This document shows, piece by piece, positions 14,390-61,516 of a stretch of DNA of 64,000 nucleotides (positions are counted from its first letter, which is position 1; every line of letters starts with the position of its first letter). The notes under the pieces are model-generated. The model searched no databases and had not been told where the DNA came from. It was given only the letters and a program-made list of their open reading frames with translations. The position numbers were made by a program, and so were the translations under genes. The stretch is from contig DF236979.1 of the NCBI GenBank assembly GCA_000708835.1, positions 62,001-126,000 on the forward strand, in the 5' to 3' direction. Source of the stretch: Klebsormidium nitens. Its lineage: Eukaryota > Plantae > Klebsormidiophyceae.

Positions 14390-14592
14390 TATATCTGCGG
14401 GACGAAGACATGAGTAACCCAGCATTGAATGCTGTGAAAACCTGCAAGCCCATTTACGTATATGCGGGACGAAGACACGAGTAACCCAGATCTGAATGCT
14501 GCAAATAGACCTGCAAGTTCATTTGCATATATGCGGGACGAAGACCCGAGTAACTCAAATTCGAATGCTGCGAAAAACCTGCAAGCCCATTC
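14390..14592. repeat. Three tandem copies of a ~68-bp unit
   Basis: TGCGGGACGAAGAC..GAGTAAC...GAATGCTG...ACCTGCAAG recurs at 14396, 14463 and 14532. Confidence 0.9.
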
Positions 14593-15008
14593 ATGGACAA
14601 GAATTGGTGATGCATACAAATCCCAGTATCATACGGCTAAGATGCAGTATTGCTGACGGGTATATCATGCTGAGTCGCAAAAGAGCTCGCTCTCGAGACC
14701 GGCAGGCCACTATGGTGTTTCATTCGGCATTCTTGAAATACCAAATCCCTTTTTACCGTTCTCCTTTGTCGCGGCTTTCGACTGGAGTCTGGCTAGAAGG
14801 AGTCTACTGAAAATACCAGTTTTGAAATTTGCAGGTCTTCGAGCGTCTTAGCGTCGGAGAGATGCAATAGTAAGAAATGAACCCACTGTCCAGTAGTCAA
14901 CAGCCTAACACGCAAAGCTGCTCAAAGATTTCTATCCTAAAGTCTGCACTACAAGAGCTGGGCGGAGTCATGTAGCAACTTAGAGGGAGCAACCTTGAGC
15001 CTTCGTCT

Positions 15009-15731
15009 TTAATCATGGTGCAACCCCTGCCGTGTTGCGGCCAAGCGTCTCTCACAAAAGTCAGCAAGCCTCATAATAGCAAGCGGGAGCAGCAACCCCA
15101 CACCAAGGACTACTCCCATGGCACCTGTGGTGATCGCGCACACTCTGAAGAAGGTCGTCGCAGATTCTGAACAAAGGTGGATTTGCTCTTTTTCCGGGAC
15201 AAGGGGCGTCAGGTCACCATAAGGCTCCCCCAACCGCGCGCAGGGGTACGAGAACCCGACGTAGAAAGATAGGTTGTCCGTCGTGCATAGCTGCAAACTA
15301 AGGTTGCCTCCACCTAGCTTGGAAGCAAGGTACTGGTTGAGTCCTTGGTTAGGGTCTGGCAGGATAACCGGGCCCGTGTGCTCAAAGTAGGTCTCTGGCC
15401 AAAGGCAGTGTGCTGCTGTGCTGGTAAAGACAGCGGCTAAGACGGCTGAGATGGATACGATTGCCTTGAGAAACGAATCAAGTGTCTGGAAAATAGGTTC
15501 GTCCGCGGACGGATCGTCCCTGATAATATCAAACGCAAAGCTCGCCGCAACAGCTACTAGATGGGCCACAAATCTTGGAACAAACATGAAGCCTACGGTA
15601 AGAGAGACGTAGCTGAGCAGCAAAAATGGCCAACGGACTCTTCGTTTATGCACATTACTCGTCAACGGTGGAGGACGCTCGCAAGATTGGTCGGGGGCTT
15701 GCACTTGGTAGAAATCAAAGCTTGGCCCCAT
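15009..15731 (-). CDS. Intronless 240-aa hypothetical multi-pass membrane protein
   Basis: ATG-to-stop ORF with 3-4 hydrophobic segments (WPFLLLSYVSLTVGFMFV; AIVSISAVLAAVF; AITTGAMGVVLGVGLLLPLAIM) and a Cys-containing loop. No family recognised. Confidence 0.5.
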   Translation of the reverse strand: MGPSFDFYQVQAPDQSCERPPPLTSNVHKRRVRWPFLLLSYVSLTVGFMFVPRFVAHLVAVAASFAFDIIRDDPSADEPIFQTLDSFLKAIVSISAVLAAVFTSTAAHCLWPETYFEHTGPVILPDPNQGLNQYLASKLGGGNLSLQLCTTDNLSFYVGFSYPCARLGEPYGDLTPLVPEKEQIHLCSESATTFFRVCAITTGAMGVVLGVGLLLPLAIMRLADFCERRLAATRQGLHHD

Positions 15732-16997
15732 GGAAAGGGACTAGCATCTGATGACTTGAACAAACTCGGACGTGCCTTCTCCTTTTTTCTATCCCCTTTG
15801 GGTCGACTCTGTTGTATCTGTTGAAGAAGCTGCTCCGCAGATACTCGTTGACCAAAGTCGGTTCCGGAAGTGGCAAGAGGCTAGCGCTAAGGCGACTCGT
15901 CGAGTTGCCACCATTCTGAGCGATGCTGTGCGTCAGCAAAGGACAGGTGCAGAAGAAGAAGAGGAGCTTTACAATTATCTGGGAGCGAGCGGGTGCCGCC
16001 TCCATCATGTCCGTCTGCATTCGGCTGTCGCCAGACGTTCGAAGTCAACATGAAGATCTGAACATACCAAGCTCTCACCATCTTCCAGTACCTTACTTTT
16101 TGCAGTATCAAATTTAAGCGGGCGCAGCTCGCGGTGACCCGGCTGCTCTTGGCGGCGAGCGCCGCGCAGAGGTGTTGGAGCGCGCCGAACCACCCGGGGT
16201 TTTGAAGGGTTTATCGGACAACGGCCGGCCGCGCGGCCGGCTCAGTTGCACCTTGCCATTGCGTCTCGATCACAGGAGACACGCTCATACAAAGGTTCGG
16301 AAGCGTTGATCGATGGGGGCAGTCCCCAACCTCCCTTGGATTTGATGACTTAGTGAGTTCATCGCCGTGCTTCCGAAGTTTTGTGCCGAAACATCTGCCT
16401 TTTTGGCGGATGCGAAAAAATCTGTGTCAAGACAGGAGATACATGCGTACTGGCAGGTTCTTGCGCACGTATCATTGATCTCCGAGCATGCCATGAGCCG
16501 TCGTAGGTTAAATGCAGGGCGTTGCAACATGCAGATGCTGAATCCTTAGCCGATTCTAGATATTGACACCTTTCAAGCATTTCCAAACTCTCAATCCAAC
16601 TCCTCGCGAGCCCATGGTCTGCCTTTCCTAGACACGCAATTGTGGACGCGCTTATGAGGAGCCACTTGCATTTCCGATTTAGGTCAAATCAGTTTGCTCA
16701 GACAACAAATTCAGAGACGATCTTAAATTGAGCTCTTCCTTCTATCGACGTGCAGTTCGTTATAAAAGTTGGTCATAAGCGTTTGAATACGTGCTAGCTC
16801 ATCTCTAACGTACTTAACAAACCTCTTATCTAGACTCTGCTGAGAATTAAAACAGAAACACCTTAATTAGATCACCGCTCAATGACGACTCGCGACAAAG
16901 CTTCGCAACCGAAGGTACGCTTACTCCCCTTGTCCCCCACACCATCTTAAAAGTAATGCTTGCCATGTCGATAAGGTGGTAATTTGCCTTGAAGGGA

Positions 16998-18354
16998 TCA
17001 CACCCTGCCAGCACCAGGGGCATAATATGGTTCCCGTGTATATCCAGCCGGTGCGAACGGCTTCACACCGACCGGGGTCTGCGGATACTGCTGCTGCCGC
17101 GCGCGTTTGCGCGCGTCCCACGTTTCGCTACCCAGCGCGAGCACGCCCGCGCAGCAGCCCCCCACGCAGAGAACCACTACCGCGACAGCCAACCATCCGA
17201 CGGTCAGCGCGCACAGCAGAGCAATCTCGAGCGTCGGATAAGTGTGCCGCAGAACGTCCATAAGGCAAGCCTCGGCGTCGAGGTTTGGCGCGGTGAAACC
17301 GGCCGCGTTGCGGCTGAGGATCCAGCCCTTCTCGACGCCCTTGTTGTATACGCGATGGTCCTGCTCCCAGCCGTGCTCGAACGGGCGGTGGACTGACGTC
17401 ACGAGTGACGCGCATTGCGTGGCGACTTTGCGGGACACGTGCTTGGGGAAGGTGAGGCGCCAGCCCAGTGAGAGCGCGTAGTATCTGGACGGAAAGGGAA
17501 GGGGGCTGGTTGAAGAAAACGGAAGGAAGAAGAATTGGAAATAGACCGTGACAAAGGGCTTTTGGCGCTAAGGAGATCCAGAAATGGAGAGTCGTAAATG
17601 AATTGTCTGTCAGAGCTTGGAAGAATACATTCGAGGTTCGCTGCCCCCCTACAAAGACCAGAAACATACAACGGGTAGACAGAAGCTTCTTGGAAGAAAC
17701 GAACCTTTGCTTGCATTTCGTTTACATTACTTATTTTGTGCGGTCTGCAGATGGAAAGCTTACCCAAGAAAAGTGTCGATCCGTGCGCCAGAAAGACTGT
17801 CAACAAATGCGTGAGGATACCTTTGAGCAGATGCACTACTTGCTTCCCGAAACTTTCCCATTGAATCTGCTTCTAGATTGTTCACAAATTCTTCAGGTAA
17901 GCAGAGAATGATGTGCCGACTCGACAAGGACGCAACACAGGTATTCATGGCCCTTTTCGGAACCAAAAAATAGGATACCACTTGCTTTTCACTGGGGTGT
18001 AAGTACGGTGCGCAATGAGATCGAAAGAATAAAACAAAACCATGCTTTCAATAATCAGTAGACCGCTGTCGTGAGGTTGAAAGTGATTGCCGCTCACGTC
18101 CGCCAGCTACGCGCTTGGGACCGCTTTCACCAGATCTTTTGCAACTTTGCATCATTCAAACGTAGATCTAGAACAAATGCACAAGGATAGCAGAGAGGAT
18201 CACCAAGAGCTGGGTAACGGACGGCTTACTGGTTGGGATTCTTCACGTCGCGCCAGAAACTATAGGTGAAGTTCGGATTCATCGCAGACTTGGCTGCCAC
18301 TTGAACGGCCATGATGGCGAGGAGACCGCCCACTAACAAGAGGACACGTGCCAT
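16998..18354 (-). CDS. Uncharacterised type-I membrane protein, paralog B (~203 aa)
   Basis: Exon 18354-18230 (MARVLLLVGGLLAIMAVQVAAKSAMNPNFTYSFWRDVKNPNQ, phase 2) and exon 17484-16998 (YYALSLGWRLTFPKHVSRK...TYPTLEIALL, TM helix, Cys cluster, Pro/Tyr-rich tail). Confidence 0.82.
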
Positions 18355-47200: not shown

Positions 47201-50200
47201 GTCCTGCAACGAGAAGGAGCGTCGTGCTGAGATGCTCGAAGTCGTTAATTTGATTTGGAATGCGTGAACTGAGCTCCCACTTTGGTCAGGGGCCAGATCC
47301 GCTGCATATGCGCGCTTGACAGGGTTTTTGACCCGCACAGAGGACTTTATTGACGGATTCAAGCAATCAGCGTGGGTCCCTTTCGACTAAACCTCGCTCA
47401 AGAGAACCACACGGCTTTATTCTGCCTGCGAAGGGGCATATGCAGCCGAAACGCGGTGGTTTGCAAGAATACCCTCCGAACCCGTGAATAAGTAAACCCA
47501 GTGCTAGATCTAATTAAAACTTAGACGGCATCGCTGACCTCAACCCGTTGATGAAAATCTGTCCGTACACCTGTCGATCGGGTCAAATAGCCCCATAACA
47601 GACGGACGTACACAAAGCGAAAGCAAAACCTCTATCGGTAGCCTTCGAATACGATGCCGCGGTACTGTATGAAATCACCCATCATTTGCACCCAACTTCC
47701 GACGACTCACGCAGCAGTCAAGACGAGATCAAGCAAGCACGATGACAAACTCGTCGTTTTGAACATCATCGCAACTTTCTCGGATCACTGAAGCGCTCGG
47801 TGCAGAGAAATAGTGAGAGCCAACGAGTCTCTGTGACGTTTGTATACGCACCCGTCGTTCATAAGCGACTCCCCCTCAATGATGGTGCTCAGTTTCTTGC
47901 TGGCCCCCAGTTCCCTCAAAAGCGCCACCACGGCGACCGGGTCGGTTGCGCTCAGCAGACTGCCCAACGTTAGGGACAGGCTCCAACTCCACGAATAGGG
48001 GAACGCGTACTGCACCAGGATATATTGCGGACTTTTACTCAACAATCACAGAAAGGAAGCACGTTTGTGATAAGAATTGCGTTTTGTAACAACTCGTTGG
48101 GGGACAAAGACGGCGTGAGCTTGAATGCACCTAGAACTTGCGAACCATGGCAGAAATGGTTTTCGAGGCCGCTCTTTGACAACCCCCAAGAATCCATGCT
48201 CAGATTCGGCACAGAAGAACGTAGGAATAAGGAAAGAGGACCTTGTTGCTTTGGTGAGATTGACACTCAAATCATCAAGCGCAAGCACTTTATTCGAAGG
48301 TGATTTGATTAACAAGAACAGTAAGTGCTCGTAGACAAGTTACAATAGAGCTGGAGAAAAACTTTGAAATAGAGAGCTTCGGTTTATTATGCCCACCTTG
48401 AGCAAGGCTCCCAGAATGAAGGTGTTGATGAGGACTCCCGGTGCTGCTAGCAGGGCCATTTGCCAGATGCATTTCTGCACAAAAACAGAACCACGTGCTC
48501 AGGCAAGAGCTAAATTCAGCTGTTGAATGTTGTTGTCAAAGTCGGACACCATTGCTCTGAACAGATATCTCCCTAAGTTCACTATCAACGACTTTCCCAA
48601 CGCCTGACATGTAAACTTGCAAAACGCCAGGTAGCTGGGGCTCCTTTCCAGACGCCTCGCATCTAGACTTCCAAAACACGAGGTGGCTAGTGTTGAACAG
48701 ATTCCAGTCAAAACAGAGGTAGGTCATTCTTAGAAGTCCAAAGGGAAGTACAGTAGGCAATCTAAGTTCGCCATGTAAGCTGCAACCAAGATGAGCCGTT
48801 CCTCTAGCCAGCCCTTACTTTTCAAGAGGGGAAGAGCGATCAAAGTACTGTACGATGCTTCACCGAAACCATGTACGACGCATTCGAGAAATCTAGGAAG
48901 TATGTGGAGGCGCAGGAGTAGCGCCAAAAGCATAGAGATCAACCAAACACAGACCAGATCTGTTCAACTGCCCATGAGATCTTACCCTGACTTGGTGGAT
49001 CTCCAGGGACATAGAGCTCTCGAACAGCAGCGCCGGAAGGAATATAAACAGAATCAGGCTTGGCTCAATGTTGGCCCCTGTGCCAACAGAACAGTGTTAG
49101 CATTCGGGTCCTTATCCTGCTGCCAGTCGCTTAGAGTTTGTTTCTCTGAGTTCGTTAAGCTTGCCGAGAAGGCTGGCTGGTCCTCCAAACGTTTCGTAAA
49201 AGCTGTACTGAGTTATCATAGTTGATCCCGCTTCCTCACGGCTGGGTGGTTCTCCGACCATTGCAGCTTGAACAAATCGCTGAAAAGGGTTGAGCAATTA
49301 GCAAACCACTGTCAGATTCGAATGCAGTTCACCTGAATTCACCTCTATGTTGGGGGGCAAAAGGATAAGGCCAAGCGCAGAAGATTCACGCATCTGGATG
49401 CTTTCTACCCAAATTACCAAGTCCATCTTTATGTGGCAGGGGGAATGGATAAGGGCAAGCGCAGAATACTCACACATCTGGATGCTTTCTCCCAGAGTAC
49501 CAAGTCCATCATGTGCATTCTCATCTGCAAAAAGAGGGAAGACAAAGCAGTGAGCCCACAAACTCCTAACCAATGCTGGTTGGTCTATTTCAGGCCGACG
49601 GAGCGAATATTCCGCATCCTGACTTCGCCGAACACCAGACTAGATGAAATGTGGAATCTGGGAGCCCCTTGTCAACATTGTTGGGCGATGGACAGAAAAC
49701 ATATGCGGGCCGCTCTTGCCAGAGCCGTTATTGGGAATACAAGCAAACATTTTTGTTGCAAGCTATGCTTGTATTTGATTGTACGCATAAAATCCTCCGC
49801 GCTCTCTCTTATCCACAGTCCCATCTATCTTGCCCATGGTCCAAACAGTAGAGCTAGCAGAACGAGTTCGACATGAATCTTGTGAGCGGACTGGTGTTTA
49901 TGTCATCAGGTTGGGGCACCTCTAGTCCTTGAGCTGCATTGCATGCCAGCCGGTTGGAAAGCTCAAGCTTTTAGAATTTGGATCTACAATCGGCACACAA
50001 ATTTGGGGACTCCAGCATTCTGAAGATCTCGCTGGCCAGACCTGAACAACCACTTCACAATTGCGTTGTTTCCCGACTTGAGTTGACTGGGGAGGTCCAG
50101 CGCGGGAGGGCAGAGTCAAGAGCATTTAATGTTCAAGGGAGCTTCCAAAATAATGTAAGAGAAAACTGAGTGGGGAACGGAGACACCCACCAATGGTCCC

Positions 50201-50377
50201 GAGAATGATGCCAATGATGAGAAGGGCGACAGTGTACGGCACGGGCGTTCTGGCAAACACCTGCTTGCAGAGCGCGCCCAAGATCAGGGCCAACCCAAAA
50301 AAGAGGATCGCAACCTCCGGCTTAGGATACGCCTCTTCTTCTGTTAAGGACGAGGTGGCGGTGGTGTTCATTTCCAT
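35215..50377 (-). CDS. SOS1: Plasma-membrane Na+/H+ antiporter SOS1/NHX7 (~1151 aa)
   Basis: 23 phase-consistent exons: 50377-50191, 49524-49474, 49077-48986, 48474-48397, 48009-47852, 47203-47102, 46644-46527, 46286-46234, 45767-45657, 45239-45071, 44272-44207, 43852-43784, 43428-43321, 42740-42607, 41850-41741, 40916-40634, 39760-39589, 38615-38316, 37976-37821, 37383-37324, 36900-36799, 36358-36220, 35852-35215. Motifs FLPALLFESS, SATDPVAVVALL, GESLMNDG, WAGLRGAVAL, DEELGPAHW, cNMP-binding-like domain. Confidence 0.97.
40310..40690 (-). repeat. Three copies of the SOS1 exon-16 tail plus 5' splice site
   Basis: GGGATGCTC..TGGCGGC...GCACCATCAGGCCAG|GT recurs with exon-like ends at 40634 (used), 40485 and 40323. 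Confidence 0.85.
40861..41390 (-). repeat. Five tandem copies (101-120 bp) of the SOS1 exon-16 3' splice site plus exon head
   Basis: AACCGTGCAG|GCGTGCAAGCCGCGTACTGGGACCTTCTCGACCAGG recurs with AG at 40917, 41034, 41135 and 41255, and a mutated copy near 41373. Confidence 0.92.
44551..44589. repeat. 13-bp unit x3 (ATTAGCCTACCTG) in a SOS1 intron
   Basis: Direct reading. Confidence 0.9.
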
Positions 50378-50662: not shown

Positions 50663-50789
50663 AGAGTAATAAAGCTGGTCAAAAAGACCAGCTCGTCGGC
50701 CGTATAAAAATACAAGAAAACAGACGCAGATTGAACCCAACCTCAGCTATAAAATCACGGGCAAAACCGCCCTTTTAAAACTCACCGCG
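50663..50789 (+). repeat. Left (sub)terminal inverted repeat of the KDZ element
   Basis: AGAGTAATAAAGCTGGTCAAAAAGACCAGCTCGTCGGCCGTATAAAAA...CCCAACCTCAGCTATAAAA..CGGGCAAAACCGCCCTTTTAAA matches the reverse complement of 61391-61516. Internal hairpin GCTGGTC-AAAAA-GACCAGC. Confidence 0.9.
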
Positions 50790-50972
50790 ACCCTGCCGCG
50801 ACCGCGGCGCGGTCGGGCCCTGTCCACATGTACTCGATCAGGACAGTTGATGCTTGAGCAGAGACTTTTCCGAACGGAAATCGACTCTTCTTGGCCAGTT
50901 TGGCGCTTGCATTGTTGCAGAGAGCAGTGGGAGGGTGCATTGAATCAATCCAGCGGACTGCAAAGACAGCAT

Positions 50973-53900
50973 ATGGAAGAAGAGGCTGGAGAGGATGGGG
51001 CACACAATGAAGGAGGAAGTTCAGGCGGCCTTGAAGAGGAAGGCGGCTGGGATGACGATGGCCAAAGGAGGCCGCGGCGCTCAGCTTTCACTCAGTCTGG
51101 GGAACTCGATGATGATGAGATTGAGGAAGTCTTGGAGATGTTCAGCTTCGATGAGCTGAAGCACCGCAAGGCAGTCTATGTAGAGGCTGTGAAAAGGAAA
51201 GAGGCCACAGAAAGAGAGGGTGCTGGAAATGAGAGTGAAGCTGACGAGATGCAGAGGGCTCGGAGCCAGCGTGGCAGGCCAGGACGGGTTTTGTCCAGTG
51301 CTGAGAAGCGGAAGAGGTCGTTAGCAGCAGAGCAGCAGATTCTAAAGCTCTTCCAACGGATGACCAACAAATACGGCGTCACAGCATGGGTTTTTGGGTA
51401 TACAACCAGCATTGGGAAGCCGCGCATAGGGGCTGCGGAGAGTGTGCAGCCCTGGTGGGTCCTAGGGAAAGTGTATGAGGTGAATGCAATCAGAGCACAT
51501 GTTGCGGGCCGCGGGGACCTACAACAGGAGATCAACCGCTTGGAGGGGAGCGCACTAGATGAGCTGCTCCAAAAGCTCAACGGGCCGCAGCTCCACTCGC
51601 TGGCAGCGTTTTGGTTTCCAAAATGCAGTCCTTCTATCCGGAAGTTCCCCCTAAGCGGAGAGAAGGGCAGTCCTCCCTGGTGGCCAGCAGAATCACGCCC
51701 GTAAGGTCTCGTTAATGAAGAATGAACCCCTGCGGGAGGTGACGCTTGCAGCCCTTCAGAACATCTGCGTCTCAGGCCAGAGCTCAGCAGCCACAACGTC
51801 AAAGCTTGAGGAGGTTTTTACAACCTGCAAGGTGCTCCGCAGCGAGTCCGCGCGTGTCCGGGCCATTGTACATAGCGTCATCAACCGGTCGACTGCCCTA
51901 TGGCCACCTCAGCAGGATTCTGCCACCACGGGTAAGCCTAATAATTACTAAGCTGAACCACCAGAAAGTGCGCCTGGCTGATTGCAAGTGCAAGTTGCTG
52001 TTGCGTACAAGTTGATCTGGAAGGGTTTCAGCATGGCCATAGTCTCTCTGTGGTACGTCAGCAGATTGGCAAGAAGAAAGTTCTAAGTATATTTTAAATT
52101 CTACTTCCTCTTCTTCTTATGTTTCTTACATAAAAGGAAGTATTCAACCTCAGTTGTCTTCTTGTGGCAGGACTTTGCCTTCTGTCCTGATGCCTATCAG
52201 TATCTAGTGTGTGTTGGACTAGGTTCAGAGGATCTGGCGAGATCCATTCACAATATGGGACTTGTTACAGATTCTGCTGTTCGCGAATTGATCGGTTAAG
52301 TCATAAAATTCTGAGATTGTTGCATGGAGACATTGTACAGCTAGTGCACTGGAGAGATCGTTGGTGAGTCGGAGTGCAGCAAAGTGGAAACCTCGTCCAG
52401 TCTTTGCTTGAGCACAATTTGAAATGCATGACTTCATGGACTAGTAATGCATCTCGATGTTGCTCGCAGGCGCTGAAGAGGCGGGGTTAAGTGGACCAGA
52501 GGGGGGACAGGAGGGAGCCACCAACGCCGACCCTCATGAAGCTGTGGGCACCGAAGGTGAGGTGATCTACTTGGGCAGTCTGGTCTCAGCACGATGGTAA
52601 CGTCTTTCCCTTATCAAGGGCGTACACTAGTTTTACTTGGGTGGGTCCTCTGGTTTTTGTGGCTCGTTGACTTTGAAAGCTTTGGGCGCCACAGGCCTTA
52701 CCGATCAGCTGATAGTAACCAGGATCTGCGAGCTTAAGCCAGCGGGGAATCGCTGTACTGCCCTGCAAACCTCCAAGCTAATGCGCCGGCTTCAACATAA
52801 AGCTCGAGGCTTCGAATGTTCCTACTTGGGCAGCCATGATACGGTTGAAGCTCGAGGCTACATTCCTACTTGGGCAGCCACAATACGTTTGTGATCCTAA
52901 TGATCCTTCTCACATCCGCAGGTGTCCAGGGCCGTCGGAAGCGGCGACGACGGTGCGATATCACCGAGTACCCGTTCAAGTGCACGGCAGCTGGCTGTGA
53001 GGGGCATCGTGGGTTCGTTTCCGCTGGGGGATTGGCGAACCACCGCCGAGCCAATCACCCCGGTGCTTCTCGGGGTGCCACTGAGGGGACAACTGCTGGT
53101 GGCGGCTTGGGCGGAGCGGAGGATGCTGCGGCGTCTGCTGAAGGGGGACAGCCACCCGTAGAAGAAGGTGAGAGGTTTCTTTTGGCACGACAAATCTTGA
53201 CTTCGTTTGAACAGATTCACACAAAGTCAAAGGTTGTACTGTCGCCGATCAGTGTTTTGCGTCTCCCTCTCTTGGAACATATTGAAGGCTCACTTGCGGA
53301 CCTGTCGACCTTGTTGTCTCCCAACATGAGATATTCCCATGTGGCGAACGTCCAGATTTGAGTTTGCTTGGATGCAAGCGACTGAAAAGCAACCACAGGA
53401 GTTATCCTGAGTCTCTTTCTGTTGGTGCAACTCTTTCAACGACAACCGTTCTGTATACTCAAGCTGACTTTGTGACAACAACTTGACTTTCAACGTGGAG
53501 TGTCTGTGGGCTTCTTGCCCCCATGCTCGTGACTCTGCTTTCTTAGAAGAAACATGGCTTTGACGCGTTTCGCTTGACACGGCGTCGAACGTCTTCAAAG
53601 CCTGCAATACATTTTCACAGATCCTTGAACGGTATGATTAAGCTCGAAATTGTCATAAGCCAATTGCCGCATCATTCAGAATTTACCGACACCTCCCGGT
53701 TCGTACTTGGAGCGAGTTTCAAACGAGCGTGTTCAATTCCCGCAATTTTATTTCAACGAGACTTCCCACCGAGTCTCCATCAAGCGCTTGCACAAGTGCT
53801 CTGTTTTGTCCTCAGAAGCTCGACTTCGAGGCTCGAGCCGACCCTTCCCCATTTGTGAATCCTCAAGAGGTGTCAACCATTTGATCAGCTCCGGAAGTGT

Positions 53901-55562
53901 AGCTACCGTCCGCGCTGATTGAGCGCTTTTGTATGATCTAACCCTGAAACTATTCAAGTAAGACGGCTGTCAGCTTTCTAGGGTCACAGCATTCCCTTTC
54001 GTTCCGATTAAAAACATAAGGGCAAAAAGGTTCTAGTTTCGTCCATGTTCGTAACATACGGCGGTTCATTCAGGAACATCTCAGCCGTACGTACCGTTTT
54101 GTTGCTCTTTGCAATCCCCTCTAACAACTAGATGTGCGAATCTTTCTTCAGATCCACAAGCTCGACCATCCTTCGGAGAGGCGCGCAGCGACAATGAAGG
54201 TGGTCCAAGAACCGAGAGTGAGTGCGGCGTTTTCAGCATCGTACATTGAATGCCTATCCGTTTGAAATTAGAATTCTTCAGATCAGGGTGCGACAAAGAC
54301 TTGAATTCGACAATTGTTTTCCAGTTCGAGGTTTATTTCGGGGTAGGTGAGGTCGACCGGCAAATCGTAGTGGCTTCTCGTCCTTCTTGAACAACGAAGC
54401 GAGTCATGTGACGGGCTGGCTTTGCCGATGGACAGTGTCCAGTTCACAGAATCTGCGTCGAGTGGTCAAGCAGTAGGATAATGACCCTTTCGATTGGCAC
54501 GCTCTCAATCCCCAAACGTTCAACGGCCATTCACTTCTCAAGTTTGTCCAATCCGTCGTTCTTACCCCACCTTCTTATCTACTTCAAGTTTCAAAATCTG
54601 CATAATAACAGAGAAGGCAGCTAGACTTGTGAATTCTGTAGACGCATGTGTGCCACGTGTCACAAGTATGTTCGAGGTGGTGCGTGGAATTCCTCGGATC
54701 TTGGTAAAGGTATCAAACTTCCGCTCGTGCTAACTCAATCATTCCAGCCAATCCAGTTCTTTGATCCTTTTTGTTTTCTGTTGACGTACCTGGTTGGCTG
54801 CTCTTAAATGTTCAGTCCCTGGTTAGGAGCAATTATTCAGTCAGCGAAAGACCGAGTCCATTGGACGGTCGGCTCGGTGCTTATCTCACTCGCATGCCGT
54901 GGTAGGCTTTCTGTCTTGAAGGTACAGCCATGTTTTTGTTCCTTCAAGTAGTTAGGCAGACTTTGGGGTGCCGTATTCTTTTCTGACCACCTCATCCACC
55001 AAGTCAGAATTTGAGGTGCATGAGTCGCGTTGGACTGAACAATACATGTTGTCTGCTGCAGGTGCAGGTCACAATCAGCCCGCCAACGAAAGCGGCGGGG
55101 GCCGCGCGTCCCGGTCTGACGACCCCGCGACGGTCCACTTCGCGGCTACCGAAGGGGATCCTAGAAGAGCTAGTTCTCCGTCGGACCCCCCGCCGACGCT
55201 GTACAGACGGAGGAGGAAGGCTTCTTTCCCAACGTGGAAGACAGTGCGACGAACGGCGGGGACAAGGAAGGGGCCAAGAGAAGTTTGAAGAGATCCGGAG
55301 GAGGGTGAAAAGTGCTTCGAGCCCCTCGCTTGATGGGATGAAGGACAACCATGGCTACGTTTTTATAGCACATCAGACGGGTAATAGAAAAGGGGAGTTT
55401 ATGTGTGTCCACTACGCCCCTCATCGGATGCTAGATGCCATTGGTCAGAAGTGTGGCCTCAATCTTGCAGGCTTGAGCTTGGACGACAAAAGAGCTGCCG
55501 TAGACAATCTTTATTGGACGAGGTACTACGATGAACTGATTGACAATCGAAGAACCGAATGA
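50973..55562 (+). pseudogene. Transposon-borne EIN3/EIL-like DNA-binding protein fused to a C2H2 zinc finger; frameshifted
   Basis: Exons 50973-51931 (frameshift near 51702), 52470-52556, 52922-53167 (YPFKCTAAGCEGHRGFVSAGGLANHRRANH), 55062-55562 (further frameshifts). All junctions phase 1, GT-AG. ILK..M...WVFG...GKP..GA.E....WW and C.P..RKFPL..EKG.PPWWP match the EIN3 domain. Confidence 0.85.
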
Positions 55563-56631
55563 GGTACAATCTAAGCAATTGGGCGCACTGCTGGCAACAA
55601 TCTGAAGATAGATGAATGATGCTGGCGTCAAGGATACAAGTTTGGCATGCACGATTGAAGCATGTTGTACATAGACAACGAGTCACAGTTCATGATATAA
55701 CTTGCCGTACAATGGAACCGGTCTTCATTTCGGTTTTGGTCATGACTTGCATGGCACGCGGCGGCAACAGCAAGCGACTCCCTAAGTTGGTGTGAATAGA
55801 CCGGGATTCCCGAATGGGGCGACGGTGCGCGCGCACAGATGAATCTAGATTCAAGTTGCCTGCCGGATTTACATGCAGGGCGACGAATTCAATTGAATAC
55901 TATATTTCAAAGTACGCCTCAGATCAGCTACTACTACCGCAACGACAGTATAGCTAGCTTCATCATGTAATGAGACCGACGCGCGGGATGCGACCGTGGA
56001 TATATTGAATAGAAGTATATTGAATGGAAGTATGCCCAGTTTGAGCTCAGACCGATTTGGGCCGGACGAGCCTGTCCAAGGATTGCATGTCTCTAGGTCG
56101 GACTAATATCGAAGATGTGAGTATATTTTCAGTTGACATCATTGATCGACATGATTGCTTGCACACTTCTGAGCGGCAATATAAATCTTACGCGACTTCT
56201 AGGTAGCATCAAGCTCAACTTCGCGATTCTGTATGGTATGCACATGCGCGGCCGGACCGGAATATGTAATGTAATGAAGCTAGTATGGAATGTGTCATGC
56301 ATGTACATACTTCCTATTGGCAAGTCGGAACCAGCTTAAAATGGCTGACTGGCCCTGACCGCCTGGCAGTGACACTTGTGCAGCAACGTCATTCATGGCT
56401 GCCGATTAGTACAACCTAATTGCACCAAAATGTCACTGGGAGAATAACTACGGAGCATCCCCGGGTCAAGTCGGTTTAATGAATGGTCGAGCCTGCCTGC
56501 ATCATTCCAGAGTTTCGAGCAATATTTGGATTTGCAGGTTGCCATATCCGATGATCATATTGTCTCGAAGTTCGATGGGCACACGTACGGGCAATTGTCC
56601 AATGCGCCCACGCTTTGTGTTTTTTTCTGTG

Positions 56632-59600
56632 CTAGTTTCTAAGGTGTGGCAGTACAGGCAGGTCTCCGAGATCTATTTGCCTATTCAAGCAGTGCAGAAA
56701 GTATCGTCCGTAGTGTAAAAACGTGCCTTGTCCCATGAACGCCGCTTGCGCTTTCATGCAGACGAGCCTAGAATTCTTCTGTTCGGACAGCTGTGAATTC
56801 TTGTTGTGCAAGATTGAGTACCTAGCGATGCCGTAAGCCGGACTGCACTCCTTATGGTTCACTGTGTGCATCCAGTCGATGAGCCACTGCACGCTAGCTG
56901 CCCACGACGCTTCTCTGTTAAGAGCGTAAGTATGGAGATGGCATACGTTATCGTAAATAAACATTTTCAGCCGTCGCCACCGGCAGAACAGCACTTCGAA
57001 CACCACCCTCGGGGACTCCGCTGCCGAGAGGACGACAAACCCAACGCACTTGCTGCACCCCGTGCAGAAAAAGGGGTACATCCCCGGGGTCACGTTCTTA
57101 TGCTTGCCCTTGAACTTCGTGCACGTGGGCCCCACTTTCTGGCTGAAGTAGTCGGCGGCGTACCTCTGAAGAGGGCGCCAGATGGGCTGGTTCGGAAAGT
57201 AGTGGCCGGTCCGGAGAAATGCTTCCTCGTCGGACCAGTCTTTTGGTGTTCGCCCGCCTGCAAATGATGTTGCACAGAAGCGAATCAGGGAATTCGGAGC
57301 GCTCTTGTAGGGTCCGACAGGAGCCTCGCAACAAAGGAAGCCGAGAACCCAAATACCTTGAGACTTTCAGAATACTTTCAATAAACTTTTGAAAAGTTCC
57401 GCGACTGGGTCGATGAGGATACAGATTTGTGTTGACCGCAAGTTAACAAGTTGAGCGGTTGGATGATTTCGCGATAGACACAAGTAATTCGGAGCGCTCT
57501 TTACGTTTCGAACAAAAGCAAGAAGGCAACCGTCAGGGCTGTGGCTTCACGAGAGAGCTTTGCCGGCTGCTGGAAAAAGAAACGTCAATAACCTCAGACT
57601 TTAGGAAGCAAACTTGCCCCGGCAGCTTGGGGTCACGAATGAAAACTGACAACCGTTTGTCAATCAGCAGATACATTGACCTCGGGCGATGGATGAGGCT
57701 TCGAATAAACACCAAAGAGTGAGGAGAAAGAAAGGCAGAGACCGGTGTTGTCCAGTACATACCCCCTATCTCAGTAGTCTTGGTAAGAATGACATCGCCA
57801 TACAAGTGCGCAAAGTTTGGAAGGGACTTGATGAAGCGTATCAGGTGCCGCCATTAAACGACAGCCTTGACAGCAGAGATTGGAAGAGAACGGGTACCCG
57901 ACTGGTCCGATTGAATTCATATTGTCTTCTCAGTCTGACCCCGTTGCCATAGTCAGCTTAACAAGTCGAAGCATTTCTTCAAACGCGGGACCATCAATGA
58001 CCGTATCAAGCAGGAATGCTCACGGTAGTTAAAAAAAGGTGACTGCAAAAAGAAAATCACTCACCATTCGGATCGCCCGCAGCCGCATCGTTGTCCCGAA
58101 GCTTCTTCTTCTTCAGCTTTTCCACCTCTGCTAGTGGCTCCTCCACATAGGCTTGGCGCGCAACCCTAAGCAGGTCTCTTAACAGCTGGAGGCACTCATC
58201 CGTTAGACGGCCCCCGCTTACAGAATGCTGAGCTCGCACGAAGTCGAATAGAACGGGGGCCCGAGCAGCGAGTTGCCTGGCTTGCCCGAGGTCTGGAAAG
58301 AAGTGACTTTCGTTCTCGAGGAGATGCTCTACGATTGGCTCGACCTCCGCGGGCAGAATTGCGCAAACCGGGCTCTTCGTTGCAAGCCCAAAAAGCAACT
58401 CTCGGCACATGGGGGAGCTGTGGTATCTTCCGTTCTCCAGCTCGGGGGTTTTGAGGAGGAAGCGCAGGGACGAAAATGAGGCGGCGGCGACTGTTGTCTC
58501 CAGACCCCCCAGTTCTACTTCCGTTAGACCCGCCCCCGCTTTTCCGACTGGCCGAGCAAACTTGAGGAGAAGGTCTCGGCACACGTTGTCGTTCACGAAG
58601 ATCCGCTTTTGATGTAGGGAGCCCGTTTTGAGTGGCCCCTCGACAGCCTCGTACGGGGACACGAGGAAGCTGAGGTCCCCCCGGTACCCCAGCATGATGC
58701 CGTCCCCAATGACGCACTCGGGCTCAGGCGCCGCTCCAACGGGGTGCGGGCATGCGCACTTGAAAGACGTGTCGTAGTCGATGTCCTGGAGGGTTATGTA
58801 GTCCATCCAGGCGTCTTGGAACGTGGAGCGGAGGTTGACGAATCTTTGGAGAGTGGCGGGGGGCAGCCCGGAGCCGGCGTACATGGACAGCACCGCCTGC
58901 CACATCGTGTAGAAGGGGTACTTCGTCCGCCACATCTGGTTGCTGTACCTGCACGCCGATGAGCACGCAACTCAATCAGTCGGGTATGCAGTAAGTCGAC
59001 GTCATCGAGAACGGCAAGCCAAATCATAGATTTTCCCTCCTCTAGTTTCTCGGACGGCTCTCGATGCCCCCCTATAAATTCGAGAACGAAAAGACAACGG
59101 TTGTTCGAGCGTGATCACAATCTAAACCGAGGCGCACGATTCTCGCAAAAGCGGCCACATCGGAACCTGCAGAAGACTGGTCCGTGCATTCAACTCTGGC
59201 AACATTTGAGGCGAACCTCCTGTTGTACCGTCAACTTGGACGCACTCTCAGAACACTGGACCAAATCTTGTCCGTATAGTGATTGCACCTGATCCATTAC
59301 ATGCTATCTCAATATTGGAAACAGATAGAAGCTCAGATGGACGGCTCCTTCGTTGGAAGCCTCAAGGAACTAGTCACAGTGCGTTCTTGTTACCAGCCTT
59401 CAATGAAGCAGCAAACGAGGTGATGATCATCTGGTGAAGTCCTCAAAACAGAAGTAAGAAAGGTCGACTGACTGTTTTCTAAATCGGGTTCCAACAACTT
59501 GCAAGATACAACAGACTTTCACTAGTGGACGTCAGCTCGGGGCAAACCAACCTGTGTTCTCTACCCGTAAGAAACAGAGGACCGCAGATAAATCTTTGAA

Positions 59601-61232
59601 ACGACTCAAACCGACTTCAACGGGCAACATCTGTGAAACACCATCTATCTTGAGCAGGCTATGCAAGCCTCAAAAGCGAACCGTTCCTGCCGTGCCACTT
59701 TGAATGTCCGAGTCATCGTCATTCTAAAAAGCGATCAGAACTGGCGGTACACAAAAACGTGTGTTGACTCCCAGAGCAGACCCTTCCAAGTTCAAAGCAA
59801 ACGCCTAGGATTATCTCAGAGCAAGGTGACACTGCCTTTGAATCTTCTCCAAGACCTCACAGCCTCACCAATTCAAGAGTTCGTAGGAGAACAGGTACTT
59901 GTCGTTGAAGTTCAAGACGCCGTCACCCCGCCCATCGTAGTGCCAAGTTCTGCCGCAGTTGCATGACCACACCTCCACGCGCGTCGGCACCGGAGCAAGG
60001 AGGTGGAAAATGGTCCCATCGACCGTCGTCCCCTCGCTATCCTCCATCTGCCGCCCGCACCCCAAGCAGACCAGCGCCTCCACCCGCTCCACCGAGCAAC
60101 TGTCTGGAAACTTCCGGCTGCCATCACCCCGCCCGCGCAGGATGTCGACGAGGTGCTCGTCACTTTCGTGAAGCTCTGCGATTGGTTTTCGAGATCTGCA
60201 CTTCAGCTTCCGCTTGCCGGTTCCAACGTCAAACTCCTCTCTGAAGCGCACCTCGAACGCGGCCGCAGACATTCGCGCAGCCATTGACACTCGCTCTCCC
60301 AGTAGTTTCTGGACATGCCAACACTTCTCCTACCCCTTCCCGTAACAACTCGTGCAGCGCCGCCCCCCAGTCTTCGTTTCGATGACCACTATGCACTCCG
60401 TGGCTGAAGTGCCAAGCACCCAGGCCTTGGGCGCCTCCCCAACGAACGGCAGCAGGTAGACGCCATCGCCTTCAGCATCATCTTCCCCACCCGACGCTCC
60501 CACCCGAGGCAGCCCGCAAAGCCCCTCAGCATCTAGCCGGAGCGATGCCGCCAGCATGATCAGAACCTCCAGATGGATGCACTTGTCTGCCTGGCCACAG
60601 AGGTACTGTGGAGACAACGGCGGGTGGCGCACTCCGCTGAATATTGATTTCTGAAGCTCCATCTCAGGGCAGCAGCTGCACCAGTGTGCAATGCCCACTC
60701 CTCCGCCTAACACAGCGATCTGACACAGCCCTGGCATTGCATACGCTTGATGATTCAAAGTTCCTTTCTTCCTGTCAAACTCCGGCATGCAGAAGCTAAC
60801 TTCAGGGAGGCCTTCTTCCAGGTCCGCTTCTGATCCCGCTGGAAGAAGTGGGGGGAGGCAGCCAGCGCACACGGCAAGTAACTGATTGCAGTACAGTTCG
60901 ACAGCACTGTTCCCAGCAAAGACAGCGCCGGCGCCTTCAAAAGGCAGATCTTGCATATCCGGCAAGTCTTGCTGCCATTCTTGCGCACCGGCAAACCCAG
61001 CTCCCTGATCACTGTTCTCAACAGCGCCGCCCTGCCTGACAGGATCTTCTGGTACAGCATTGCCATTGGTAGTTTCTGCAGCACCTTCCCTCTCCTGAAA
61101 TAATCTGGGGTCCTCTAGAATGTCCCTTCTGGACTTGTGCTCAAACGTGCCGTCCTCTCGTAGCACTGCCACATCAGTTTCTTTGCCTTTTGGCCTCCCC
61201 CGCGCCTTTCCTGTATTTGCCCGCTTGCTCAT
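56632..61232 (-). pseudogene. KDZ transposase (~957 aa) with one in-frame TAG
   Basis: Exons 61232-59869, 58948-58065, 57257-56632, phase-consistent. SWIM-like WCSC...CIH, CTSC...CWH, CxC-type cluster (CLGC...CNC..TWHYDG), catalytic region VIGDG / TPGMYPFFC / ESP / FIYDNVC / LNRE / IDWMH..NH..C / NSQ.SEQ.N. Stop at 60330-60332 with coding frame continuing on both sides. Confidence 0.92.
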
Positions 61233-61390
61233 ACTGTGCGGCCTTCCTCCAGAGCCCTTCAGAGCCCTTTGAGGGCTGAATTGAAAGCAGGCCCTGAAAA
61301 GGTGCGCCCCAGATCACAGCCGCCCACACTGGTAGTAACCTTGCTCAGCACTTGCTTCAGACTAGCAATCCGCTGCTTTTTACCCGCCTC

Positions 61391-61516
61391 CGCGGTAGGT
61401 TTAAAAGGGCGGTTTTGCCCGAGGTTTTATAGCTGAGGTTGGGGCCAACCTGCCCTGGGTTTTATGTGTTTTTATACGGCCGACGAGCTGGTCATTTTGA
61501 CCACCGTTATTACTCT
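61391..61516 (-). repeat. Right (sub)terminal inverted repeat of the KDZ element
   Basis: Reverse complement of 50663-50789 with scattered mismatches; palindrome GGTCATTTTGACC retained. Confidence 0.9.

Follow-up and report, generated by a model that had tools for sequence, protein, structure and literature searches.

Among the systems closest to the locus described here are transposons in which a second gene accompanies the transposase. In PIF/Harbinger a Myb-like protein, and in En/Spm the protein TnpA, are DNA-binding partners of the transposase. A 2014 study by Iyer et al. is said to have described KDZ transposons with TET/JBP passenger genes. The family to which our gene has been assigned, EIN3/EIL, is regarded as a transcription-factor family specific to streptophytes, with no established origin. 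KDZ elements have been documented to carry passenger genes such as TET/JBP, and the Zisupton and Dileera types produce 8-bp target-site duplications (PMC12730594). Here we analyse a 64,000-nucleotide stretch of the Klebsormidium nitens genome (positions 62,001 to 126,000 of scaffold DF236979.1; hereafter the window), in which an original prediction had placed an EIN3/EIL domain inside a KDZ transposon. We find that the K. nitens "EIN3 family protein" encoded there is a broken copy of a KDZ transposon's conserved second gene. We are highly confident of the anatomy of this EIN3-like gene and of its status as a transposon gene. We further consider it probable that the gene supplies the EIN3-like DNA-binding partner of a whole family of KDZ (Zisupton/Dileera-type) cut-and-paste transposons in Klebsormidium-type green algae, of which it would be the conserved second gene.

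The EIN3-like gene and its element

A protein search identified the gene that begins at window position 50973 (plus strand) as GAQ79417.1, which is named "Ethylene insensitive 3 family protein" and placed at 112,973-117,288 of scaffold DF236979.1; the host is K. nitens, an early-diverging streptophyte, a possibility that the original prediction had raised. The peptides cited in the original prediction are present in the open reading frame (ORF) 50847-51704 (+; 285 amino acids, first ATG at 50973) and, in the case of the SESARVRAIV block, in ORF 51715-51951 in the +1 frame. ORF 50847-51704 matches the Pfam family EIN3_DNA-bd (PF04873) at E 4.7e-14 and 52.8 bits, against a curated cut-off of 27, with ORF residues 128-281 covering profile positions 27-173 of 252. 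When compared by sequence only, it also matches the solved DNA-binding domains 1WIJ (EIL3) and 4ZDS (EIN3) near PPWWP. Together with the profile-profile and fold comparisons given below, the Pfam match bears out the assignment to an EIN3-type domain. The first of the blocks previously aligned with EIN3 (DELKHRK against DELERRMW) received no statistical support, and the profile-profile alignment starts later.

The gene begins 191 nucleotides inside the left of two 120-nucleotide inverted repeats, 86% complementary to each other, and points inward. From the other side, starting 165 nucleotides inside the right repeat, a multi-exon transposase gene runs on the minus strand. Its first exon encodes a CxC4 cysteine cluster of the type "associated with KDZ transposases" (PF18717; E 1.1e-9, 38.7 bits against a cut-off of 26.9), which scores 29.7 bits in the related element L001. 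Its C-terminal exon is homologous (E 2.4e-18) to the protein P0143, which matches the Pfam KDZ family PF18758 at 33.1 bits against 26.6. The inverted repeats and the minus-strand CxC4 cluster thus uphold the KDZ setting claimed for the gene. The features of the element, in window coordinates, are:

50663-61516, no strand assigned: whole KDZ-type DNA transposon, 10,854 bp, 52% G+C, bounded by inverted repeats
50663-50782, plus strand: left terminal inverted repeat, 120 nucleotides
50973-51930, plus strand: exon 1 of the EIN3-like gene, acidic N-terminus and complete EIN3-type domain (Pfam; RNA contigs 50890-51598 and 51820-51930)
51699-51700, plus strand: 2-bp deletion (frameshift) within the EIN3 domain, just past PPWWPAES; TT is present in other copies
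52469-52554, plus strand: exon 2, linker (spliced RNA contigs, GT..AG joints)
52920-53165, plus strand: exon 3, RRKRRRR nuclear-localisation-like run and single C2H2 zinc finger (FKC..C..H..H) (spliced RNA contigs)
54150-54217, plus strand: exon 4 (spliced RNA contigs)
55062-55562, plus strand: exon 5, basic region and conserved module of ~85 amino acids (DNHGYVFIAHQ...LYWTRYYDELI) (joint 54217>55062)
56632-57264, minus strand: C-terminal exon of the transposase, DNVCHLHTY...WMHTVNHKEC, putative KDZ catalytic part; 88% amino-acid identity to L001, ratio of nonsynonymous to synonymous substitution rates (dN/dS) 0.065
58057-58951, minus strand: middle exon of the transposase; amino-acid identity 81% to L001 and 51% to L002, dN/dS 0.13
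59865-61232, minus strand: exon 1 of the transposase, N-terminal region and CxC4; aligned to an uninterrupted 455-amino-acid ORF of L001
61397-61516, minus strand: right terminal inverted repeat, 120 nucleotides, with mirror-image TATAAAA boxes at 61476 and 61431

Within the left repeat lie a near-terminal palindrome, GCTGGTC-N5-GACCAGC (50674-50692, 12-30 nucleotides from the tip), and TATAAAA boxes at 50703 and 50748, so that each repeat has two boxes at mirror positions. GGTC-type half-sites near the ends occur in other element lineages as well, and the inner block 50742-50789 of the window element's repeats is conserved with the repeats of L001. The window element shares its terminus GAGTAATAA(A/C)G with L002. 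Its target-site duplication is degenerate (TGGGTGAA / TCGTGAAG).

RNA contigs from four runs of the same organism, identical to the window save for one letter in one contig, define four GT..AG introns by their splicing (51931-52468, 52555-52919, 53166-54149 and 54218-55061). The span 50973-51931 of the original prediction does hold the EIN3 domain, but it amounts to exon 1 of a five-exon gene that ends at 55562. As it stands, exon 1 can be read only up to the TAA at 51702-51704. Exon 3 is kept in L001, L002, L003, L007 and L008. The C-terminal module encoded by exon 5 (55293-55559, plus strand; 4198-4464 in L001) is 55% identical between the window and L001 with a dN/dS of 0.12, and no Pfam match to it was found; it weakly resembles SRF/MADS-type domains (language-model Atlas score 0.70). 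RNA depth over the EIN3-like gene is ~3; the window copy is still transcribed, at low depth.

The GAQ79417.1 model (480 amino acids) departs from this structure. It removes 142 nucleotides (51701-51842) as an intron, and the frame of its exon 5 (55062-55288) misses the conserved C-terminal module. No RNA joint supports the annotated intron, within which RNA contigs begin, at 51820 and 51829; with a gap between RNA contigs from 51598 to 51820, the intron is not strictly excluded. We regard it as an artefact by which the model gets past the frameshift, the whole model being built around two frameshifts.

The element lies upstream of a host gene that encodes a Na+/H+ exchanger with a cyclic-nucleotide-binding domain; the first exon of that gene (50126-50377, minus strand) is 286 bp from the left repeat. 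From this gene, contigs of RNA 3-4 kb long, at a depth of ~115-183, extend into the left repeat, and in one run the exchanger transcript crosses the whole repeat, reaching 50825, 43 nucleotides past it. Since exchanger RNA enters the repeat, the 5' end of the host gene may start in the transposon, with the repeat serving as a promoter or bidirectional promoter.

Recurrence, selection and recent inactivation

Exhaustive searching of 1.84 billion cluster representatives with a profile returned only four close relatives at E < 1e-29, followed by a gap and then by canonical plant EILs at E 7e-11 and weaker; a second search added four more relatives. Neither the EIN3-like nor the transposase profile found a relative when metagenome contigs were scanned. 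At least three diverged lineages of elements contain the pair of gene and transposase. In L001 (10 kb) the genes follow the order and strands of the window, and what can be aligned between the two is confined to exons, at 69-82% DNA identity, and to the inner repeat ends, not the introns or spacers. L002 is a complete element: its 78-nucleotide inverted repeats lie 11.1 kb from each other, it has the termini GAGTAATAAAG of the window element, and its 8-bp target-site duplication, CCTACCTC, is perfect. It contains an intact EIN3-like ORF of 355 amino acids, a C2H2 exon and a transposase at 40-63% identity, and it is inserted beside a PARG gene, the window element beside a different host gene. 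An L002-type left repeat is also found upstream of the EIN3-like gene of L007.

L003, L006 and L008 form a second sub-clade, with the EIN3-like gene ~180-460 bp inside the element end. Because their common sequence begins exactly at the terminus CAGTAATAAAAGG and their flanks are unrelated, they represent three independent insertions. In L009 and L010 a transposase of the same family is convergent with a homologue of the ORF located in L003 after the exons for the EIN3-like domain and the C2H2 finger. The same ends are thus found in unrelated genomic contexts, both among L003, L006 and L008 and between the window and L002, demonstrating mobility. The region of L003 downstream of its EIN3-like gene, where a transposase is expected, contains a nest of inverted repeats (14568-17878, arms of 26-219 nucleotides) that probably reflects a rearrangement or the insertion of a further element.

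In the comparison of the window with L001, the EIN3 exon has a dN/dS of 0.17 and the transposase exons have values of 0.07-0.17, at a dS of ~1.0-2.3 where computable; in the second half of the EIN3 domain, synonymous sites have reached saturation. Both genes have therefore diverged together under purifying selection, and recent capture or chance juxtaposition is excluded. These substitution patterns identify the EIN3-like gene as an old, selected accessory gene rather than a recent acquisition.

The broken state of the window copy could by itself be taken to indicate a recent, functionless transduplication of a host EIL in the manner of Pack-MULEs, or a host gene that inverted repeats happen to flank. 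We give this next to no credence, and the data refute it on several counts. The same gene placement occurs in elements separated by saturated dS (~1), with introns that do not align and dN/dS of 0.12-0.17; L002 combines an intact ORF with its 8-bp duplication; the gene falls outside the canonical EIL clade; and the lesions of the window copy are absent from ~99% identical copies, including intact ones.

The window element was inactivated recently: its accessory gene carries two frameshifts and its transposase a single stop. The TT missing from the EIN3 domain is present after 51698/51699 in two contigs of sequencing run X4 and in run X9, in copies ~99% identical to the window that are labelled as other organisms, and it restores the frame; the frameshift suspected before SESARVRAIV is thereby confirmed. 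In L001 the stretch matching this frameshift is one uninterrupted ORF. A second lesion, a 1-nucleotide insertion at 55274, throws the C-terminal module out of frame; the base is missing in runs X4 and X7. Run X6, from an independent study of the same organism, agrees with the window at both 51699 and 55274. Because the ~99% identical copies differ there and X6 agrees with the window, the two lesions are real in the strain and not assembly errors. With corrections of +2 and -1, frame arithmetic joins the five exons into a single ORF of 619 codons with its stop at 55560-55562. The transposase of the window copy is interrupted in exon 1 by an in-frame TAG at 60330-60332 (minus strand), where L001 has AAG.

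Stretches matching the element occur in runs X4, X7, X9 and X13-X18, which represent at least seven other labelled organisms and two freshwater metagenomes. The pieces from X4, X7 and X9, the three runs aligned to the window, are ~99% identical to it, some with an intact reading frame. These matches in foreign-labelled runs likely derive from Klebsormidium growing on or with the samples. Across window positions 50850-56400, run X6 (2018) differs from the window solely by C>T and G>A changes and is therefore bisulfite-type data. Many cytosines of the EIN3 exon read as T in this run, which suggests that the dead element, at least in part, is not heavily methylated.

Relation to canonical EIN3/EIL proteins and origin of the gene

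Pfam EIN3_DNA-bd was matched by all seven intact members of the transposon clade (best E 5.4e-15). Aligned as a profile with hhalign against 30 canonical EILs, the seven gave a probability of 98.5% and an E-value of 1.7e-15 over 193 columns, in a region that spans the experimentally defined optimal DNA-binding domain of EIN3 (PMC4564277). A joint MAFFT alignment of four ORF pieces, meant for a full-domain profile, had placed C-terminal over N-terminal pieces, and the N-terminal pieces alone were used in its stead. Among the profile hits, the 30 cluster names looked up in search of an algal canonical EIL were angiosperm or absent, and none was identified as algal. The transposon clade keeps PPWWP, and all its members lack the loop G-E-WW-LG (EEWWPQLG) before PYKKPHDLKK, whose residues are at least 90% conserved among canonical EILs; the absence of an EDWWPQLG loop had been noted in the original prediction and appears here as a gap of 16 columns.

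Structure comparison agreed with the profiles. An AlphaFold 2 model of the EIN3-like protein P0005 (mean predicted local distance difference test score 74, above 90 over residues 200-320) found its best match in the Protein Data Bank in 4ZDS, with a probability of 1.0, a TM-score by target of 0.67-0.71 and a root-mean-square deviation of 2.4-3.2 A; NRF1 (8K4L) came next, weakly. Against the AlphaFold DB clusters the order of matches was plant EILs, fungal YDR124W-like proteins and NRF1. Rank 28 in that database was A0A0U9HM92, a protein of 476 amino acids matching the EIN3-like model at E 2.8e-3, which may be another K. nitens protein, its accession belonging to the GAQ79417.1-protein series.

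The fungal YDR124W-like profile PF11001 scored 28-30 bits against all seven clade members, below its cut-off of 31.3, and aligned clade residues 206-295 with profile positions 15-104, 90 to 90, with no net indel. Its match to canonical EILs (28 of 30; best E 1.9e-5) was weaker than that to the clade, and the one canonical EIL for which a score was listed reached 20.9 bits with ~12 extra residues. Because PF11001 aligns to the clade without a net indel, we take the plant loop to be a derived insertion and the transposon clade to keep the older state. The lack of the loop had been read as a sign of domestication; as an ancestral state shared with the fungal profile, it fits capture and domestication alike.

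In a maximum-likelihood tree the five rows of the transposon clade were split from 108 canonical EILs with a Shimodaira-Hasegawa-like approximate likelihood-ratio (SH-aLRT) support of 100 and a branch of ~5 substitutions per site. This tree is unrooted and includes no outgroup; those of its canonical rows whose names were looked up are angiosperm or unnamed, with no algal EIL identified among them. A single copy nested within the canonical EIL clade, which would have spoken against domestication, was not seen; the gene forms its own clade, in several lineages, under purifying selection. The choice between capture and domestication that the original prediction had posed is accordingly narrowed: recent capture is excluded, and between ancient capture and domestication the evidence does not decide.

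We put at roughly even odds an ancient capture, in which a KDZ element took up a host EIN3-like gene, still without the loop, in a Klebsormidium-type ancestor, and the host copy gave rise to the plant EILs. The EIN3 fold is that of a wider eukaryotic superfamily, since the matches that follow plant EILs are fungal YDR124W-like proteins and animal NRF1; host genes of the EIN3-fold type therefore predate the streptophytes. The narrow distribution of the transposon clade and the varied passengers of KDZ elements, TET/JBP among them (PMC12730594), point the same way. Against ancient capture, streptophytes have so far yielded no host EIN3-like gene that lacks the loop, and the position, orientation and terminal-repeat promoter of the gene are constant in all lineages, so that any capture must be older than the whole known family.

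The opposite course, in which a KDZ accessory gene lost its mobility in an early streptophyte and gave rise to the plant EIN3/EIL family, with the loop and the C-terminal regulatory regions gained later, appears unlikely, though it has evidence of its own. The transposon clade stands outside the canonical EILs on a long branch with 100% support; it is loop-less like the fungal profile, relative to which canonical EILs have ~12-16 extra residues; and it scores higher against that profile than the one canonical EIL listed (28-30 versus 20.9 bits). Transposon DNA-binding proteins have already given rise to plant transcription factors, FHY3/FAR1 for example. Published surveys report no EIN3/EIL in Mesostigma, Chlorokybus or chlorophytes and place its first appearance at the Klebsormidium node (PMC7027972, PMC10518463); the transposon clade occurs at exactly this node. 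However, apart from the limits of the unrooted tree, ancient capture fits the same data, and the clade, seen in very few samples among ~15 billion proteins, may be a local Klebsormidium affair. Moreover, Kfl00014_0150, named in the literature as the K. nitens EIN3 gene (PMC4594257), may be a canonical host EIL; GAQ79417.1 probably differs from it, because it lies on the 30th deposited scaffold (accession range in PMC4052687). We also rate as improbable the combined proposition that EIN3/EIL regulators were domesticated from a KDZ accessory protein and that a transposon gene is at least part of the basis for the EIN3 presence call in Klebsormidium.

Whichever way the gene travelled, the finding directly affects the interpretation of EIN3 presence among streptophyte algae. 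The presence of EIN3 in K. nitens has been used to date the birth of the family to the ancestor of Klebsormidium and later streptophytes (PMC7027972, PMC9136324, PMC10518463). As the K. nitens "EIN3" analysed here is a mis-modelled transposon pseudogene, tables of hormone-signalling presence and absence in streptophyte algae need a check of transposon context. The transposon EIN3-like protein is unlikely to have a role in ethylene signalling. The transposon clade offers a concrete, testable sister group for EIN3/EIL, one that lacks the loop and has links to the folds of fungal YDR124W-like proteins and animal NRF1.

Proposed function and comparison with known systems

Each terminal repeat carries TATA boxes and heads one inward gene, for the CxC4/KDZ transposase or for the EIN3-like protein. 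The intact accessory protein, predicted at ~619 amino acids, would comprise the EIN3-type domain, a nuclear-localisation signal, one C2H2 finger and the C-terminal module. We infer that it is the element's sequence-specific DNA-binding partner, which may recognise the element ends or terminal promoters and recruit or regulate the transposase, as the Myb-like protein does in PIF/Harbinger and TnpA in En/Spm. The odds that it acts as such an end-binding cofactor seem to us about equal either way. EIN3 is a dimer that prefers inverted sites ~10 bp apart (PMC4564277); in the window element, the palindrome at 50674-50692 and the block at 50742-50789 are candidate binding sites only. ATGTAC at ~50828, considered as an EIN3-type site, is no more than expected by chance.

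A protein with a complete transcription-factor-type DNA-binding domain, a nuclear-localisation signal and a C2H2 finger might instead mainly target host or element promoters, outside transpososome assembly, tying expression of the element to a host signal or manipulating host transcription. The TATA boxes inside the inverted repeats, which drive both element genes, and the Na+/H+ exchanger transcripts that reach into the left repeat would suit such a regulator. We nevertheless think this unlikely: no transactivation region or target was identified, and co-divergence with the transposase at similar dS fits a transposition partner at least equally well.

Several observations weigh against the gene being the conserved DNA-binding partner of a KDZ transposon family in Klebsormidium-type algae. 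Pfam KDZ (PF18758) gave no direct match on the transposase pieces of the window, L001 or L002, and the C-terminal module was not detected in L002. L003 has no transposase or KDZ match within 9 kb downstream, so some copies are perhaps non-autonomous or something else. L001-L010 are known from contigs without an assigned host. The canonical EIN3 site A[CT]G[AT]A[CT]CT was not found in the terminal 400-500 nucleotides of three elements, and the transposase has cysteine-cluster DNA-binding modules of its own, so that an accessory binder may be unneeded.

The partnership of an EIN3-like gene with a KDZ transposase is genuine and, within the literature that could be searched, undescribed; our search of it found no paper tying EIN3 to transposons or to YDR124W/DUF2841. 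The parent kinds, KDZ elements with a passenger and two-component DNA transposons, are known. With this partnership the KDZ superfamily gains a DNA-binding partner of the transcription-factor type, and well-defined KDZ elements, complete with inverted repeats, an 8-bp duplication and two repeat promoters, are extended to streptophyte algae.

At the level of the protein, the transposon clade and plant EIN3/EIL share a homologous DNA-binding region as far as TAKESATW, the same helical-bundle fold, PPWWP and a domain contained within one exon. They differ in that the transposon clade, at ~20-27% identity, is loop-less and separate, and in that its protein is fused to a C2H2 finger and another C-terminus and is encoded inside a transposon. 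The fungal YDR124W-like proteins (AFUB_079030; PF11001, formerly DUF2841) resemble it in the second half of the domain, are likewise loop-less near PxWWP and match in structure with a probability of 1.0, whereas the clade stays below the family threshold and, in the beta-hairpin and basic helices of the first half, resembles plant EIN3 in sequence. The likeness to animal NRF1/Ewg (PF10491, 8K4L) is weak (Foldseek probability 0.77-0.98, Atlas language-model score 0.82); with low TM-scores and no significance at the sequence level, it is a lead to a superfamily and not a membership.

At the level of the element, the window transposon resembles KDZ elements with TET/JBP in its CxC cluster and probable KDZ-type transposase, its inverted repeats, the 8-bp duplication that is perfect in L002 and the presence of a second gene inside. 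In contrast to these, its host is a streptophyte alga and not a fungus, its partner is an EIN3-type DNA binder and not a DNA-modifying enzyme, and both of its genes are driven from the inverted repeats. With PIF/Harbinger (Myb/SANT), En/Spm (TnpA) and MuDR (MURB) it has in common a transposase and a separately encoded, conserved DNA-binding protein, and with MuDR also the long inverted repeats that each head an inward gene. It differs from all three in transposase superfamily and in DNA-binding fold, and the role of its partner protein is so far a predicted one.

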